From Selaginella moellendorffii (lineage: Eukaryota > Plantae > Lycopodiophyta), in contig NW_003314268.1 of the NCBI RefSeq assembly GCF_000143415.4, forward strand, positions 666,128 to 730,127: a stretch of DNA of 64,000 nt. The letters run 5' to 3'. A program made the position numbers and the translations under genes. This document shows positions 21,133 to 29,562 of the stretch, piece by piece (the first letter of the stretch is position 1; each line of letters starts with the position of its first letter). The notes under the pieces are model-generated. The model was given only the letters and a program-made list of their open reading frames with translations, did no database searches and was not told the DNA's origin.

Positions 21133-21681
21133 CTTTGCCGCGACCTAATCGATACCGGCGCCTAGCGCTCCTGCCAGGGATTCCGCCATGGCAAGAGGAG
21201 GCCGCGAGCACGGATCGATCGGCGCCCGCGGAAATAGGGCGAGATCGATCGATATTACGGCAATCTTGGGGGGCGTTGCGGACAACTCACCCCCGCGCTG
21301 GAAAGAAAGAACTGGAACAAGAGGAAGAAGCCGCTTCAAGAGAAAAGGTCGCCATTCTGTGGCGGAATGGGAGCGCCATCGGCACCATCCATCTGTCCAC
21401 CTGACCATTCCGCGGCATATTCCAGAAGAGAAGAAAGATTATCCGGGCTTCGATAAAATTCGAGGCTTGGATGGATGACGTCTGCCAAGGAAGCTACTTT
21501 GAGTTACAAAAGAGTTACCGATCGATCGGCGTAACTACTGGGCCGCATTCACTGTGTTGGTTGCCCGCCCCCACGTTTGGGTGGTCACTGGTAAGGTTTT
21601 TTACCAGCGGGTACTTAATTATTGCGACCGACACTGCATTTGGACATGCGTATTAGGTCCATTATACGAAGAAAATCAAAT

Positions 21682-21754
21682 GGGGATGTAGCTCAGATGG
21701 TAGAGCGCTCGCTTAGCATGCGAGAGGCACCGGGATCGATACCCGGCATCTCCA
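21682..21754 (+). tRNA. tRNA-Ala(AGC)
   Basis: GGGGATGTAGCTCAGATGGTAGAGCGCTCGCTTAGCATGCGAGAGGCACCGGGATCGATACCCGGCATCTCCA folds into an intact cloverleaf. Oligo-T Pol III terminators follow. Confidence 0.97.
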
Positions 21755-22670
21755 AACCTTTTGTTTTGTCGTTTTTTTATTTTTTGCTTTTCAAAAGCAG
21801 AATGTTTGTACACTATAATGTTACTTGGCCAAAGGCAAAAAACGAAAAGAGACTTTTTTTTCCGATTTTACCATATTAGAAGGATTCCTCAAAAAAATAA
21901 AAAGAAAGGAAAAAGTAAAAAACAAACAAAATCTTTCTAATCCGTAAAGTTTTGGAACCCCGTTTCACCCTGGGATGCATTCCTTTCTTGTCAAACCATG
22001 AAATAATTTAGGGAAAAATTTTCAACGGACAAGGAGAAAATGTTAAAGTGCGCCCACAATGATCGCGGGTATCGCCAATTATGAGAAGAACAACGCTATG
22101 TTAGATGTAGCTAGCAAAGAAGGACAGCACAAACGCCAAAAGTCGTCAACCAAAGCTCTAAAGTAGGTGCCCTAAATTTATATGAGAGATTCTCCCCCTC
22201 TCGTGGGCTAGTTAGTCTTCCACCGCGCTGTGGGGAGAGCGAAATATAGGGTTCTTCGCGGCGCGTCTCGTCCGGGCTAGCGGGCGGCGCTGCTCCAGGT
22301 ACTGGCATTTGGAATTTCTGCGCTTTACGAGTGAATCGGGAATCGCGAATCTAGCAGTTCGCATTGCCTTGCTGTGCTGCTTTTGGATTGTGGCTGGGTG
22401 ATGATGGGAGTGTCTCCTGTGTGTGGGGAAAATATGCCGTGACCAGCATCAAAGGCGTGATTGAATTTGCCTGTGTGGAGCATCTGGAACAGTGAATTCG
22501 AGTATCAGGAGTTTCCTTTTCTGTGGCTTGGTCTCGCCCCTCTTTATGCTTTGTTCCAGCGACTGATGCCGTTGAATGGATTTCCCTATATATTTGATGC
22601 CAAGTCTTTGAGGAGCTCCAGCGAGGGTCACAAGTCTTCCTGGTGTTGTTGTTGTTGTCTGTCGTGAAAA

Positions 22671-25600
22671 ATGGGACGATATCCATCGGGTCCAAAGAGC
22701 TGTGTGAGTGATCCTTCGTGTGATGTGCTCATCACGAAGGTCACGCATCCTGCCGTTGTGACGGTGTTTTGCTACTGGGGATTTGTCTTGCTCGTCTGCT
22801 GTTCTTTCCAGATCTTGAAGCTCTGGCTGATCCGAAAGAACCCAGTCAAGCCCGTGTTTCTACGGGAAGAAGCTCCAAAGTCTTCCAGGCCTGCCACAGG
22901 CAGCGAAGGTGCCTCAAGGTTTCAAGGCCAGGAGTTCCTGCTGGAGCCGGAGGAAGCAAAAGAGCTGCTTGTGACGGGCTACACTTGGTCCTACTTTGGC
23001 GAGTTTTGCTACTGCGTGTGCTGCCTGACGTCGTTGCACTGGCTGGCACTGTATGTCGTCATTTTGTTCGACACGTACAACAAGTGCGACATTGGTGGAA
23101 TTGACAATCTCTGCTTCTTTGGCAACTATTTTATCTTTGGAACCTACGAGCTGAATGCCAAGGTGAGCAGTTTTGCTTTTGCTGCTCTTGGCTTTGGAGT
23201 AGGATCACATCTATGTCCTTGCTCTTGTCCAGGTCTTCTTCACTGTCTGGTGGCTATCGGTTGTGTGGTACACCACCTGGGTGCTGTTTAAAGGGAGGGT
23301 ACACAACTGGTTTCGTCTTCCATGTCCGTTGTCTCAAGCGACTGTCGCTTTTGTTTGGGCCAGAGACCGGGAAGAAATCCTCTCAGCGAATGCGTTTGCT
23401 CTTGTCTACATCATTCGTCGCTTCAAGGTTCGGACCACAAGCTTGACATATGTTACAAACACAAACAGCTCTGCTTTTTGTTGTTGTTTTTCAGAATATA
23501 ATTATGCCTCCAGATGCTCAGGGCCATTTTGAGATTGTCGATATCCTTGAGACTGCCTCAGGGAAACGTTATTTTCTCTTTGAAGGGCTTCGTGTTCTCG
23601 TGGATGGTTCGCAAATCTCCCATGCGCGCATCCAAGTAGGAGCACTGCTCTCAGATTTTCATCAGGTACGTCTTCCTACTCAATAAAAGTACATTCGCTA
23701 AAATCATACCACTTTCAGTCTCCAACTGGGCTTAGTGCCGAGGATTCTAGCAATCGTTTAGAGCATGTTGGTTTGAACAAAATCCCGTTCGAACCCGAGC
23801 CATTATTTCAGAGTATCTGCGACGAGCTCTTCACTTTTTTCCACGTCTACCAGCTCATCATGTACATATTGCAGTACTGGAACAGCTATCTCTTCGTTGC
23901 AGCACTTATGACCTGCATTGTGCTGCTAAGCTCCTCGATCACCATCTATACACGAAGGCGAAGCCAGTACACGATTGCTGAGGTTTATCTGAGAAGGCTA
24001 CTTTCTTTTCGTTCTGCCATCAAAAGTAACAGTCCTGATGTTTACAGATCACGAAAATAAAAACGGACGCTGAGGTACTTCGGGGCGGGTCCTGGACTAC
24101 CGTGGATGCTTCTCTTCTTGTCCCTGGAGATATGGTCAGAGTGAAAAGCAACTGGCTTTTACCCTGTGACTTCCTTATTCTTCAAGGTTCGTGTAACTCG
24201 GAAAATATCATTTTGTATTTATTTTTTGTGTAGGTTCATGTATTACCGATGAAAGCGCCTTAACAGGCGAAGCGATGCCTGTTCAAAAATATGCAGCTCC
24301 TAATGTTTCTCTTTCGTATCAGTCACAAGGGAATGGTGCTAGACATACACTTTTCTCTGGTACCACCGTGTTACAAGCAGGCAGTTCTGGTGAAGAAGTT
24401 CGAGCTATTGTTGCAGAGACAGGTAATCTGTTTCACTCTTATGTAAGAAACATCAACTTGAATACATCTATGTTGAATCAGGGATGAACACGTCAAAGGG
24501 GCAAATTTTATCGTCGATACTCTATCCTCAAAAGATGATTTTCAAGTACGACGAAGAGCTGCCTATTGTTGCCTTCTTTCTCGTTCTCTACGGTATAGTC
24601 TGTTTCGCCATTTCGATTGTCTTCCAGGTAAGAGTTTTTTTTTGTTGACACTAGCGTGGCGCTAACAAAATGGATTTTGTAGAACCACGCCGGTGCCCAA
24701 AGTTACTGGGTCACCAAATGGATTTATTGTATGGCCATTGTGAGTCAGATCATGTCCCCGCTGTTGCCCGTGGCTTTGGAAGTGGGACAACTTCATTCAG
24801 TGGATCGACTCAAGGCAAGTGCTGTGTTCATTAAACGCAGCCTCTTACATCTTTTGTTTTTCTAGAGTCGCGGCATCTTCTGCCTCAATCCCAAACGTAT
24901 TGCTATCGCTGGGAAAATACGTGTGTTTTGTTTTGACAAAACTGGCACTTTAACCAAGGAGGGCCTCGACTTTGTTGGTGTCCATTGTGTTTCCAAGGTA
25001 GAAAACGAGAACTCGGTGTTTGAACCAGTCGTCTTACATGAGAAGCGAGATATTGAAAACACTACTGTGTTGCACGGACTGGCTACATGCCATGCGCTGT
25101 CCAAATTTGAAGGGATCTTCGTCGGAAATCAAGTTGAGGTACATGTTGTATTTTCTCTAATGAGCAGATGGATTGCAATATTGACGCAGGTGAATATGTT
25201 CAAATCTGTTGGCTGGGACTTCTATGAACTTGACGATCGATCAGTGGTCGTTCGCAGTGACGATGGAAAAGAGTTGAAGGTTGTCCGACGAAATGAATTC
25301 GATCATGCCCGAGCAACCATGAGCGTTATTGTTCAAGATGAAAGGGATGAGTTTCACATATACTGTAAGGTAATTTGACTGGCTTGTTATGGACCACTGA
25401 CTAGTAACTATTGTAGGGATCCTTTGAGAGAATCCAAGAGCTTAGTAAAGCAGGTACTTTACCTTTGGACTACATAAGTACAGCTCAAGCTCATGCACTA
25501 GAGGGGTGCTACGTCTTAAGTCTCGGATACAGGTACCCTGAGTCTTTTTTTTTGGTCAGTTGTGGATGTTTCCTTTGCTCCAGGAAACTGAGCCCTTCAG

Positions 25601-27704
25601 TGTCTCCGAAGGATGTCCTGGCACTTTCCCGTGAAGAAGTTGAAAAAGAGCTGGATTTTATAGCTCTGGTTCTTTTCCGTAACGAGCTGAAACCTGGCAG
25701 CAAGGAAACTATCAGAGCCTTGAAAGAGGGCGAGGTGTGAGATATTCGTTTGGTATGCTTGTTTCACATTTCGTCAATGCCTGAGGTCTTTCTAACGTCG
25801 ATGTTCCACGCCTGCTTTTAACTTTTTGTACTTGACCAGATCCGGCCTATCATGCTGACGGGGGACAATGCGCAATGCGGACACTATATAGCAAAGCAGT
25901 CAGGAATGGTGTCATCGCACGTTCAAGTCTTGGTGGGCGACGTTGTAAAAGAAAGGTAAGACTGTTTGTACTTTTAGCTTTTCAGATGTATCACGTCAAC
26001 CTTCAGGCTAGTTTGGAGTCCTGTAAAAGCCGAATCTTCAACTCACAGGAGCTTCTCAGAAGTCCTTGCGAGGCCACTTTCCACTGAAGAGATTCTAGCA
26101 CAGCACATTAAAGGACTCGAGGGAGGCATCATAGAGCTCGCCGTGACGGGAAAAGCATTCAATTTGCTCAGGACCTCTGAAGCAATGGACAGGCTTTTGT
26201 TACACACCCGTATTTTTGCGCGTTTCACACCGTCTGACAAGGTAAGAAAGTTAGTGTAAAGTTTCTTCGAGGTTTTTTTTTTCAACTTTTCTCTCGTCCA
26301 GGCGAGGGTTGCAACAATGCTCCGAGACAGAGGCTTGATTATCGGAATGTGTGGAGACGGTGGTAATGACTGTGGAGCATTACGGGCTGCTCATGCTGGT
26401 ATCGCACTCAGCGAGGCTGAAGCTTCTGTTGTTTCTCCATTCACTTCCAAAGACAAATCAGTAAGTCTCTTCCTTTCACGGATATTGGAAGATTAGTCAC
26501 TCGTTTCATATGATCGCAGATCGAATCAGTTGTTGACTTGTTACGAGAGGGGCGGGCTGCTTTGCATACATCGTTTGCATGCTACAAATTTCTAATTATC
26601 TACGGACTCATGTTTTCCATCCTAAAGCTGTGTGCTTATTGGTAAGAAAATAGACACTAAGGACGCATTTTTCACGAACTGTTCTTGTGCCTGTGCTTCT
26701 TTCAGGTATGGCATTATTCCATGCCAAATGGACTATTTCTTTATTGACGGTGTTGCGGTGTTAACACTCGGGTATGCAATGACTTTAAGCTATCCAGAAG
26801 CTAAGCTGGGGAAGGTTAGTCCCGCATGTCTGTAAGAACACTAATATGGTTGCGTAAACAGGATCGGCCAACTTCAAGCCTGCTGGGAGCTGAAAATGTC
26901 GCTTCCGTTTTGGGCATTTGGATTATAAACCTGTGTTTTCTCATCGCAGCAGTCGTGATGATGGCGAACGATCCCAATTATGTCAAATGGCCTGCTTCGT
27001 AAGTGGATGGATCTCTCCCGTTAAAGAATTCATGTTTTTCATTTGCCTTTCTAGATTTTCTCACGAGGCAAGCTGGTGGACACTAAGTGATAACTGGGAG
27101 TCGACTGTGCTCTTCTTCACGATGTACTTCCAGTTTATAACTTCCGCATTTGTCTTCACATTCGGGTCGGGCTTTCGGAAGAATGTTTTCAACAACCATT
27201 TGCTGATTGTAAGTATCTCCATCGAAACTCAGGAACTCCTTTTTTTGTTGACTCTCACATCTCTATTCTCGACGCAGGGATCTTATGCAGGGCTCGTCAT
27301 TCTGTTTTCCTTCCTCTTGCTTCTTCCACACAGCTCTCTCACCAGCTTGTGGCACGTAGCCAGCGAGCAATTCAACAGACTTGGCACAGACTCTCCAGTT
27401 TGGATCTTATATCAGGTCTGTCTCAAAAAAAGTCTTCATTCCATGTTAAGTTTTTGTTTTTTTTTGTTTCTCCTCTAGAAAGCTGGAGGAAATCCGTCAC
27501 CAGCAATGCCACTGCGCTTTCGACGGAACTTATGGCTAATTATCATCGCAAGCATGATTGGGAATTGTTTGTGGCAAAAGGTTCGTTGCTCAGTGTTATT
27601 TTCTTCACGTACTAAAGTTCTCCCTGCAGCTTTGTGTTGACGGCTTCATAGCAAAGACTATAGCAAAAAACCATCCCTCAAAACGGCCCACTTTCCATCT
27701 GTGA
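22671..27704 (+). CDS. P5-type ATPase (P5B/ATP13A-like, divergent), multi-exon
   Basis: [23 protein letters not shown], phosphorylation site [57 protein letters not shown] and [13 protein letters not shown]. Includes a GC-AG intron at 24815-24865. The start codon is uncertain. Confidence 0.92.
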
Positions 27705-27924: not shown

Positions 27925-29562
27925 TCAACACAGCGGCGTCCTCTTCTTCATCAGCCGATTAAACATGACAACGCTTCCCATCTTCCCATTCGCGGCATAC
28001 GTATGACCCAGTAGAAAATACGGGCTGGCATCCTCTTCGTCGATATCAATCGCGGCATCCGCAGCGTGGTCTCCGACCCGCTCGTCGCCAATGCTCCGGC
28101 AAGCGCAGAGAAGAATCCTCCAGCAAACCACGTTTGGATGGAACGGCATCGCGAAAATGAGCTCCACCGCCTCGTCCAGCTTCGCAGCTCGTCCGAGGAG
28201 ATCGATCATGCAGACGTAGTGATTGATGGTTGGAGCGAGACCATAGTCGCCGATCATCGAGACGAAGAGCTCCCATCCAGTTTGGATCACTCCGGAGTGG
28301 CTGCTGGACGAGAGCACGCTGATAAACGAGATGTGATCCGGAAGAACACCGTGAAGGACCATGGCGTGGAAGAGCTCGCGGGAGGAAGCGGTATGGCCGT
28401 TGTGCGAGTAGACGACCATGATCGTGTTCCAGATGACGATGTCTTTGCTGGGAAGACGATCAAAGACGTTCCTCGCGGCCGCGACGCTCCCACACTTTCC
28501 ATACATGTTGATGAGCGCGGCGGAGACGAAGGGATGGAACTCGAGGTGGGCGATGATCGCGTGGATCATCCGGCAGTGCGATCGATCCGAGTGAGATCCA
28601 AATGCCTCCAGCGCTGCGACGAAGGTGGTGCTGCTGGAAGGGATTCCTTCCAGATCCATGGCGCGGAAGAGCTGGATTGCGGGTAGAGGGCATCGGTTCT
28701 GGGCCAAGGCCGAGATCATCACCGAGCACGAGAAGGAGTCGTGATCCTGGAGAGCGATTTCATCGAACACTTGCTTGGCTCGGTGGGCATCGCCGCTGTC
28801 GCCCAGCGCCGCCACGATCGCCGTGCACGAGATCACGTCCTTCCCTGGCAAGATCGCCCAGAGATCCATCGCTTGATCCAGATGCCCGTTATGGGCAAAT
28901 GCTGAGATAGCTCCAGACCACGAAATGGAATTCCAGCTGGGCATCTTCTCGAAGAACTTGCCAGCAGAAAACGCTTTTCCCCCCTCGTCACAAGCCGAGA
29001 TCATTGCGTTCCAGGAAACCACATTGCGCTCTTCAATGAGATCGAACACCTTCTTTGCCGGATCAAATTCCCCAGTCTGGGCAAATGCTGCGATCATCGC
29101 GTTTCCGGACACTACATCCCACTGCGGCATCCGGCGATAGAAGTCCTCCGCCATCCGCCAAGATCCCTGCTGCTGCGAGCAAAACCCTATCATCGAATTC
29201 CAAGACACCACATTCCTGGACGCGCGCAAGAACAAGAGCTTTGCCTGGCACAAATCCCCCTTTTGGGCATATGCCGCGATGATGATGTTCCACGAGTAGA
29301 TGTTCTTGTGGCGGATCTTGTCAAAGACCAGTCGCGCGTCGGGCAATCGATCGCAGCTGCCATACATGTGAACGAGGAGATTGCCGAGGAAGGTCTGGCG
29401 ATCGTGGCGGTGCTTGGCGAGGAGGAGATGGAGGCGGCGTCCCTCGAGGAGGGATTTTGAGGCGCTACACTTGCGCAGTGCCACGGCGAAGGCCTGGATG
29501 TCGATGGCGACGCTCTCGTAGAGGGATTTCTTCCTCGTCTCGGCATTTTGGCACTCATTCAT
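27925..29562 (-). CDS. PLS-class PPR protein with E extension and no DYW (candidate organellar C-to-U editing factor), 545 aa
   Basis: Tandem PPR motifs (NIYSWNIIIAAYAQKG, NVVSWNAMISA), HYVCMIDLLGRA, E motifs WRILLCAC and PYFLLGHTYAANG. Intronless. Confidence 0.92.
   Translation of the reverse strand: MNECQNAETRKKSLYESVAIDIQAFAVALRKCSASKSLLEGRRLHLLLAKHRHDRQTFLGNLLVHMYGSCDRLPDARLVFDKIRHKNIYSWNIIIAAYAQKGDLCQAKLLFLRASRNVVSWNSMIGFCSQQQGSWRMAEDFYRRMPQWDVVSGNAMIAAFAQTGEFDPAKKVFDLIEERNVVSWNAMISACDEGGKAFSAGKFFEKMPSWNSISWSGAISAFAHNGHLDQAMDLWAILPGKDVISCTAIVAALGDSGDAHRAKQVFDEIALQDHDSFSCSVMISALAQNRCPLPAIQLFRAMDLEGIPSSSTTFVAALEAFGSHSDRSHCRMIHAIIAHLEFHPFVSAALINMYGKCGSVAAARNVFDRLPSKDIVIWNTIMVVYSHNGHTASSRELFHAMVLHGVLPDHISFISVLSSSSHSGVIQTGWELFVSMIGDYGLAPTINHYVCMIDLLGRAAKLDEAVELIFAMPFHPNVVCWRILLCACRSIGDERVGDHAADAAIDIDEEDASPYFLLGHTYAANGKMGSVVMFNRLMKKRTPLC

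Follow-up and report, generated by a model that had tools for sequence, protein, structure and literature searches.

The closest described relatives of the gene examined here, a P5-type ATPase gene in a 64,000-nucleotide (nt) stretch of the Selaginella moellendorffii genome (RefSeq assembly GCF_000143415.4, contig NW_003314268.1, positions 666,128 to 730,127 of the forward strand; the whole stretch is called the window below), belong to three groups. P5A includes Spf1, ATP13A1 and plant MIA/PDR2, and P5B includes human ATP13A2-5, Ypk9 and CtYpk9. P5C, the third P5 clade, was named in 2025 around Toxoplasma gondii TgFLP12 (TGGT1_289070), with PF3D7_0504000 as a further type member (Nat Commun 2025, PMC12217143). 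TgFLP12 resides on the outermost apicoplast membrane and was linked to C14:0 export from the apicoplast, and polyamines gave no rescue; P5B was not strongly supported as a clade in that study (PMC12217143). Its main text contains no description of the motif in the fourth membrane helix (M4) or of the pocket, and the term P5C was not met in the other literature that we examined. The window gene corresponds to SmP5B2 (D8R5P0, 1246 amino acids (aa), locus SELMODRAFT_439526), which was filed under P5B together with SmP5B1 and two genes of Physcomitrella (Pedersen et al, 2012; PMC3355532). The same study found no such gene in Arabidopsis, recorded a P5A gene in S. moellendorffii, and lists for mosses P5A plus genes of the xPLLP type only (PMC3355532). 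Reviews still state that P5B was lost from plants, and Palmgren (2020) does not discuss P5B.

We find it very likely that the window gene is an expressed, catalytically complete P5-type ATPase gene of a third, non-canonical clade, almost certainly P5C. An earlier reading of the window from its letters alone (the original prediction) had proposed a candidate uncharacterised pump subclass. That label is out of date, given the 2012 record of SmP5B2 and the naming of P5C in 2025 with TgFLP12 characterised. The background offered with it needs the correction that P5B-like genes of seed-free plants, this one included, were reported in 2012. Since the gene was catalogued then, seed-free plants were already known to carry a P5B-like gene; the finding is correct and, for the most part, already on record.

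We built two trees, a careful one with IQ-TREE (LG+C20+F+G4, 41 rows, 978 columns, bacterial P2 pumps as root) and a second with FastTree (99 rows, aligned with fast MAFFT settings). Both separated P5A, the proteins with PPALP in M4, and a clade holding all non-canonical proteins. In the IQ-TREE tree, the non-canonical clade comprised 24 of the 41 rows and was supported by an ultrafast bootstrap (UFBoot) value of 100 and a Shimodaira-Hasegawa-like approximate likelihood ratio test (SH-aLRT) value of 99, on a stem of 0.68 substitutions per site. Support for P5A was 100/100, and the PPALP proteins were not resolved as a strong clade. The window gene fell into a land-plant subclade (100/99) with Trebouxia as sister (100/100), followed by other algae and Chromera; oomycetes, fungi, Euglena and Copromyxa formed the outer branches of the clade. 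When land plants and PPALP proteins were forced together, the tree was 238.6 log-likelihood units worse (approximately unbiased (AU) test, p = 3.8e-90). The window gene is thus placed with neither P5A nor P5B, each of which lies apart from its clade.

We then scanned 1.84 billion representative sequences with HMMER, using the catalytic exon as query, and obtained 1511 matches. Among the best 150 of these, M4 read SPLLP in 44, PPLLP in 15, NPLLP in 11 and TPLLP in five, with minor variants; PPALP occurred in 13, which scored lower. The M4 signature of the clade is (S/N/T/P)PLLP flanked by SQ and GQ, and (S/N/T/P)PLLP was read in more than 100 cluster representatives. Named members include ferns (Adiantum, Ceratopteris), lycophytes (Diphasiastrum and a second Selaginella gene), mosses (Physcomitrium, Ceratodon, Sphagnum), liverworts (Marchantia, Riccia, Calypogeia), green algae (Trebouxia, Tetraselmis, Botryococcus), Chromera velia with three paralogs, many oomycetes, Euglena, the amoebozoan Copromyxa and zygomycete fungi (Blakeslea, Syncephalis, Basidiobolus, Coemansia, Bifiguratus). 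Apart from one beetle-labelled record, no seed plant, yeast or animal was found among the named relatives in a search that is not exhaustive for absence. That record, P0312 (labelled Zophobas morio, "ATP13A3-like", 1089 aa), carries FTISQVLTPLLP in M4, which places it in the non-canonical clade, although animals are said to lack this clade; it may be an assembly contaminant or a transfer. No apicomplexan sequence was among the matches of three word-index searches and the representative search, and a query with the conserved region of Chromera P0184 matched oomycetes, plants and fungi, with no apicomplexan.

It is highly probable that this xPLLP clade is P5C. Like P5C, it is a strong P5 clade distinct from P5A and P5B (100/99, with the same split in the FastTree tree), and its named members match the taxon distribution given for P5C (PMC12217143). 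The same distribution, the same tree shape and the presence in mosses of only P5A and these genes led us to equate the two.

Residues of the substrate site were numbered after ATP13A2 through HMMER alignments of the public window protein (P0176) and a fern homolog (P0002) to solved ATP13A2 chains; D513 of chain 8iek_P aligns with the Asp of DKTGT, and the numbering of chain 8iem_P plus 40 gives the canonical numbering. The segments concerned are as follows.

24683-24814 (+), exon 8, which encodes M4 (spliced contigs); the M4 string, residues 548-564, lies at 24728-24778 and SPLLP at 24755-24769
23863-23898 (+), M1/M2 stretch, where W251, D254, Y256 and Y259 of the ATP13A2 chains correspond to Q, N, Y and V (by P0002)
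26592-26751 (+), M5-M6, spanning the intron 26642-26705 (P0176 against chain 8iem_P)
27092-27115 (+), NWESTVLF segment before M8

The conserved Site1 residues of ATP13A2 are W251, D254, D463, Q944, F963 and D967, and its entrance acids are D254, E456 and D960 (Mu et al, 2023; PMC10082790). At the six Site1 positions, the window product has Q, N, A, F, Y and D. D967 alone is unchanged and F963Y is a conservative change; the other four of the six are replaced, three of them throughout the clade. Ala550 of M4 occupies the D463 position. In M5, LIIYGLMFS places Tyr at Y940 and Phe at Q944; M6 has Gln at D960, Asp at Q962, Tyr at F963 and, at D967, the Asp of FFIDG. The original prediction had placed the M4 string at about 24728-24778, where it lies exactly. 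It had also matched the missing M4 acid to Ala by eye and had recognised the kept acids of DYFFIDG and NWESTVLF, and the alignments bear out these points. We next counted residues at these columns in 80 clade members, 11 canonical P5B and five P5A proteins.

D463 position: clade Phe 46, Ala 12, Tyr 8, never Asp; P5B Asp 11/11; P5A Leu 4, Ile 1
D254 position: clade Phe 34, Asn 11, Tyr 10; P5B Asp or Glu 9/11; P5A Asp 5/5
Y259 position: clade Val 40, Met 21; P5B Tyr 9, Phe 1; P5A Tyr 5/5
Q944 position: clade Phe 29, Met 9, Gly 8; P5B Gln 11/11; P5A Thr 4, Ser 1
D960 position: clade Gln 31, Glu 20; P5B Asp 10, Asn 1; P5A Asp 5/5
Third position of the M4 motif: clade Leu 68; P5B Ala 11/11; P5A Glu 5/5
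Residue before the M4 motif (SQ): clade Gln 55; P5B Ile 9, Val 2; P5A Ser 5/5
Residue after the M4 motif (GQ): clade Gln 59; P5B Thr 6, Leu 2; P5A Val 5/5
Y256 position: clade Tyr 67; P5B Tyr 10; P5A Tyr 5/5
Y940 position: clade Tyr 70; P5B Tyr 11/11; P5A Asn 5/5
D967 position: clade Asp 72/72 ungapped; P5B Asp 11/11; P5A Gly 5/5
Glu of NWE: clade Glu 61/80; P5B Glu 7/11; P5A Leu 5/5

Judged from these columns, the substrate site differs systematically from that of the polyamine pumps and appears less acidic and more hydrophobic in most clade members. The earliest branches (Copromyxa and P0124) are intermediate, in that they keep some P5B residues and have Glu where ATP13A2 has D463. Partial conservation is also on record for PfATPase3, a P5C protein according to PMC12217143, since a modelling paper found that it keeps the ATP13A2 tetrad and aspartates only in part, which agrees with the pattern of the xPLLP clade. 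Within the clade, land plants are distinguished by Ala, not Phe, at D463 and by Asn at D254. They alone carry two further acids, Glu565 in M4b (PVALE; 24779-24781) and Asp1036 at the Q962 position in M6 (QMDY; 26731-26733); the members from algae, Chromera, oomycetes and fungi show V/T/K and A/G/V instead. The Glu of PVALE, the Asp of QMDY and the Asp at the D967 position are each present in 10-12 of 12 plant sequences.

These data bear directly on the view that the gene encodes an ordinary P5B polyamine exporter, orthologous to ATP13A2/Ypk9, in which SPLLP is a private and neutral substitution. In favour of this view, ATP13A2 is the best solved match by sequence and fold, relatives are publicly named "ATP13A3/4-like", and D967, Y940, Y256 and the Glu of NWE are kept. 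The xPLLP motif is nevertheless clade-wide, the clade is supported at 100/99 and kept apart by the AU test, and replacements affect each of D254, D463, Q944, Y259 and D960; the N-terminal domain of P5B (PF12409) is absent, and TIGR01657 gives about half the score that it gives with P5A and P5B proteins. We therefore regard an ordinary P5B exporter as highly improbable, and a private substitution within P5B was rejected on the clade-wide motif and the separate clade. The residue signature, which separates the clade from the polyamine pumps, likewise argues against the names "ATP13A3/4-like" and "polyamine-transporting" for its members. The core of the original prediction, a divergent P5B-related lineage retained in a seed-free plant, is upheld by the clade support, the AU test and the four replaced Site1 residues, and the substrate site looks different. 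The P5 phylogeny that it had suggested as a check puts the window gene outside canonical P5B.

Read without splicing, the locus is a series of many short open frames on the + strand that spell a P-type ATPase when taken in order. About 58% of the words sampled from the window were present in public sequencing runs from seven studies, and contigs from four runs, each from an independent study, were aligned to it. Each of the four runs gave one long contig over the pump gene that skipped 23 short stretches of 47-105 nt. After shifts allowed by the aligner, the borders of the listed skips read GT..AG in 15 of 16 cases and GC..AG in one (24815-24865). One joint, 26460/26523 with three extra letters, corresponds to a GT..AG intron at 26461-26519 beside a synonymous difference at 26522. 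Since contigs from which introns are missing at splice-site borders represent spliced RNA, the pump gene is transcribed and processed. The resulting gene model is given below.

22671-27704 (+), coding region of the P5-type ATPase, SELMODRAFT_439526 / SmP5B2, 22 exons, 1264 aa
22671-23162, 23233-23427, 23495-23665, 23719-23982, 24048-24186, 24234-24422, 24482-24627 and 24683-24814 (+), exons 1-8, from spliced contigs
24866-25138, 25190-25369, 25417-25532, 25584-25734, 25840-25955, 26007-26241, 26302-26460 and 26520-26641 (+), exons 9-16, from spliced contigs
26706-26814, 26862-26998, 27055-27208, 27278-27415, 27479-27580 and 27630-27704 (+), exons 17-22, the last five junctions from homology and GT..AG borders
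24815-24865 (+), intron after the M4 exon, 51 nt, GC..AG, with the true GC donor at 24815

Junctions 1-16 were taken from the spliced contigs, and the last five were set by collinearity with P0002 and P0176 together with the splice consensus. The joined model starts with ATG at 22671 and ends with the stop codon at 27702-27704; its 1264-codon frame contains the terminal stop only, and from Met1 to its C-terminal residue the product is collinear with homologs 1246-1266 aa long. The splicing check that accompanied the original prediction has therefore returned a full open reading frame (ORF) of 22 exons with contigs from four studies. The window and the transcript contigs differ by single bases at 22453, 23748, 23796, 24268, 24760, 25461, 26522, 26754 and 27532, at some of these positions in all runs. 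These are probably haplotype or strain variants; the two that we checked, at 24760 (Pro558 codon) and 26522 (Ile codon), are synonymous.

The window product and the public protein (P0176) are 97% identical with gaps counted and 100% identical over 1004 aligned columns, and the public 1246-aa model differs at three splice sites only. At the first, it uses a cryptic GTGAGT donor at 24740 and lacks 25 residues (ending in DRLK) that form the M4 core including SPLLP. In contrast, the 75 nt of the M4 core were retained in transcript contigs of all four runs, and the joint 24812>24864, also present in all four, fits the GC..AG intron after a shift of 2. The M4 gap in the public model is an annotation error at this intron. 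At the second site, the junction 25955/26007, the public model has seven extra residues and the RNA favours the window version. At the third, its six further residues (FSHEAS) were accepted into the window model on the DNA sequence, in which the intron after exon 18 (26999-27054) has canonical GTAAGT...TTTCTAG borders. As the core of the substrate-binding helix is absent from it, the public Selaginella model should be corrected.

The missing M4 core could have pointed to a decaying or unexpressed copy whose odd M4 arose under relaxed constraint. The gap is an annotation error, however, and the transcripts keep the exon; the 1264-codon frame is open, no catalytic motif is damaged, the transcript contigs derive from four studies and M4 is conserved across land plants. 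A decaying copy is scarcely credible on this evidence, and a pseudogene was rejected on the open frame and the transcripts that retain the M4 exon.

The catalytic motifs, already noted as intact in the original prediction, were all located in the joined product (TGEA, DKTGT, KGSFE, TGDN and GDGGND), four of them at the following positions.

24263-24274 (+), TGEA, dephosphorylation motif of the A-domain, residue 431 (motif reading)
24935-24949 (+), DKTGT, phosphorylation motif with Asp600, within the P5 signature CFDKTGTLT (motif reading)
25858-25869 (+), TGDN of the P-domain, residue 823 (motif reading)
26353-26370 (+), GDGGND, hinge of the P-domain, residue 951 (motif reading)

In TGEA, Ala replaces the usual Ser, as it does in 30 of the 80 clade members. 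Family and fold searches were run with exons or with the public proteins P0176, P0174 and P0002, and the joined product was used in local alignments and trees only. The DKTGT Asp, TGE, TGDN and GDGxND identify a P-type (HAD-IC) ATPase, and PF00122 and PF00702 match the public protein. Type V is indicated by CFDKTGTLT and by TIGR01657, which scored 633 bits with P0176 and 665 bits with the paralog P0174 against a cutoff of 618; P5A and P5B controls scored 1104 and 1167 bits, about twice the values of clade members. Neither subgroup marker was found. M4 reads SPLLPVA and so contains neither the P5A motif PP(D/E)LPxE nor the P5B motif PPALP. PF23143, the P5A hairpin of two transmembrane segments, had no match in clade members (Kwoniella control, 3e-17), and PF12409 had no match at E<=0.01 in P0176, P0174 or the Chromera, oomycete and fungal members (Aplysia 13A3 control, 3e-21). 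Single short exons mostly matched nothing in Pfam or the PDB (the M4 exon had 0 PDB matches at E<=1), and the alignments were obtained with longer pieces of the public homologs. By both sequence and fold, the best solved match was ATP13A2 (26-31% identity).

Upstream of the core, members of the clade share an N-terminal extension that the original prediction had described as extra hydrophobic segments with a Cys-containing loop; we find three segments, and the loop is present.

22671-23289 (+), clade-specific N-terminal extension (hydropathy and conservation)
22752-22808, 23013-23069 and 23233-23289 (+), three hydrophobic helices, residues 28-46, 115-133 and 165-183, the last in exon 2 (hydropathy)
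23082-23114 (+), Cys-pair loop between helices 2 and 3 (sequence reading)
22671-22703 (+), conserved M-x3-P-x-G-P-x2-C start (conservation in 63 clade members)

The longer pattern M-x3-P-x-G-P-x2-C-x3-P (22671-22715) is kept in 44-62 of the 63 members, from plants to oomycetes and fungi, and the Cys pair of the loop in about 35. No Pfam family covers the conserved tail at the extreme N-terminus. We examined an AlphaFold2 model of P0174 (residues 1-1200), a paralog 60% identical to the window product (mean predicted local distance difference test score (pLDDT) 87.7; predicted template modelling score (pTM) 0.85). The model has long N-terminal helices at 27-56, 103-131 and 154-177 ahead of a beta-rich N-terminal domain. 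By fold, it was closest to E1 states of ATP13A2 (template modelling score (TM-score) 0.82-0.83, Z about 30), with Spf1 and ATP13A1 next, and in no solved P5 chain does the alignment begin before model residue ~58-93. Should helices 2 and 3 cross the membrane like Ma/Mb of P5A, the Cys-pair loop and the N-terminal tail would be luminal and the protein would have 13 membrane helices. From the model, we infer this 13-helix topology with a luminal Cys-pair loop as a plausible arrangement.

The same helices raise the question of whether the protein acts like P5A and, as a dislocase or flippase, moves hydrophobic helices or peptides instead of small molecules. Helices 103-131 and 154-177 of the P0174 model are long enough to span the membrane like Ma/Mb, Spf1 aligns from model residue ~59, M4 is hydrophobic, and according to the modelling paper a dislocase could fit the apicomplexan relatives. 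Set against this, the protein lies outside the P5A clade and lacks PPELPxE and PF23143, its Y940 and D967 positions are P5B-like where P5A has N and G, and S. moellendorffii already has a P5A gene. A P5A-like activity thus seems improbable, and P5A membership was rejected on the separate clade and the absence of PPELPxE and PF23143.

We return to the P5C-type pump. It would follow a normal Post-Albers cycle (E1/E1P/E2P/E2) with Asp600 as the phosphorylated residue, to go by its motifs. Residence in an endomembrane is suggested by the N-terminus, which is common to fungi and oomycetes and so is not a plastid-type presequence or transit peptide. By analogy with P5B pumps and TgFLP12, transport would run from the luminal (exoplasmic) to the cytosolic side, and the cargo would be bound otherwise than polyamines are in ATP13A2. 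Most members are predicted to have a pocket of aromatic and aliphatic residues with one conserved Asp, which fits an amphipathic cargo, and we tentatively suggest that the plant cargo is amphipathic or lipid-like, for example a fatty acid.

A cationic cargo in the plant members, either a polyamine-like organic cation or a metal, is possible though on balance unlikely. It would be bound at a rebuilt acidic site of Glu565 in M4b with Asp1036 and Asp1041 in M6, and the land-plant-specific Glu and Asp together with the universal Asp at the D967 position speak for it. The D254, D463 and entrance D960 positions are uncharged, however, and the orientation of the acids toward the cavity is an assumption. 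The probability that remains falls to some other cargo. One further, distinctly speculative reading is that land-plant members are 13-helix pumps with a rebuilt acidic site and a cargo that is neither polyamine nor fatty acid, in a pathway lost or replaced in seed plants. Such a pump would have an extra N-terminal helix before the P5A-like pair, a Cys-bearing tail and a luminal Cys-pair loop, and the M4b Glu and two M6 Asp would be rebuilt on an otherwise hydrophobic P5C pocket.

Several points weigh against the main reading, that of an expressed and complete pump of the P5C type. The identity with P5C rests on taxon distribution, the Chromera paralogs and elimination, in a tree built without TgFLP12 and PF3D7_0504000. 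The group used in the AU test was named after the first tree, which weakens the formal p value and leaves the size of the difference as it is. The last five junctions of the gene are inferred and absent from the listed contig joints, and the structural model is that of a 60%-identical paralog without M10, to be read at the level of helices and fold only. The role of TgFLP12 in fatty-acid export comes from genetics and lipidomics, not from reconstituted transport (PMC12217143). The two extra acids of land plants keep a cationic cargo alive as a rival, so that the function of TgFLP12 may not transfer, and all cargo readings for plant members rest on sequence comparison.

Within the window, no other P5 gene was found. 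A tRNA-Ala gene (anticodon AGC; 21681-21755, +) lies about 0.9 kb upstream of the pump start codon, and an intron-less 545-aa ORF with pentatricopeptide repeat (PPR)-like repeats (27925-29562, -) is convergent with the pump gene, 220 nt from stop to stop. This ORF and the base composition point to a plant. Lycophytes have two paralogs each, P0001 and P0173 in Diphasiastrum and P0174 and P0176 in Selaginella. The best partner of the window gene is P0001 (66% over the C-terminal 735 aa) and that of P0174 is P0173, a pairing that suggests a duplication before the lycophyte split.

This analysis contributes a residue signature that holds across the clade, a distinctive N-terminus, acids specific to land plants, transcript support and the correction of the public model at its GC..AG intron. 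The third P5 clade is widespread in eukaryotes yet missing from the usual model organisms (animals, yeast and Arabidopsis), and functional data within it come from one member only, in Toxoplasma. Marchantia and Physcomitrium, with one or two copies and good genetics, could be the easiest route to the cargo and to the reason for the loss in seed plants.

Compared with known systems, the window gene is the same gene as SmP5B2 (PMC3355532), which was filed as P5B with a public model lacking the M4 core. With P5A (Spf1, ATP13A1, MIA/PDR2), it shares TIGR01657 and extra membrane helices before the N-terminal domain; it differs in lacking PPELPxE and PF23143, in its P5B-like M5/M6 positions and in lying outside the P5A clade (100/100). 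With P5B (ATP13A2-5, Ypk9, CtYpk9), it shares the fold, Y256, Y940, D967, the Glu of NWE and the ten core helices, whereas SPLLP stands in place of PPALP, W251Q, D254N, Y259V, D463A, Q944F and D960Q alter the site, PF12409 is missing from its clade, three long N-terminal helices contrast with the short membrane hairpin of P5B, and the clades are separate. P5C and TgFLP12 agree with it in forming a third P5 clade, in taxon spread and in the weak resolution of canonical P5B in both analyses. Unlike TgFLP12, which is on an apicoplast membrane, the plant protein has no plastid-type presequence, and it carries land-plant-specific acids in M4b and M6.

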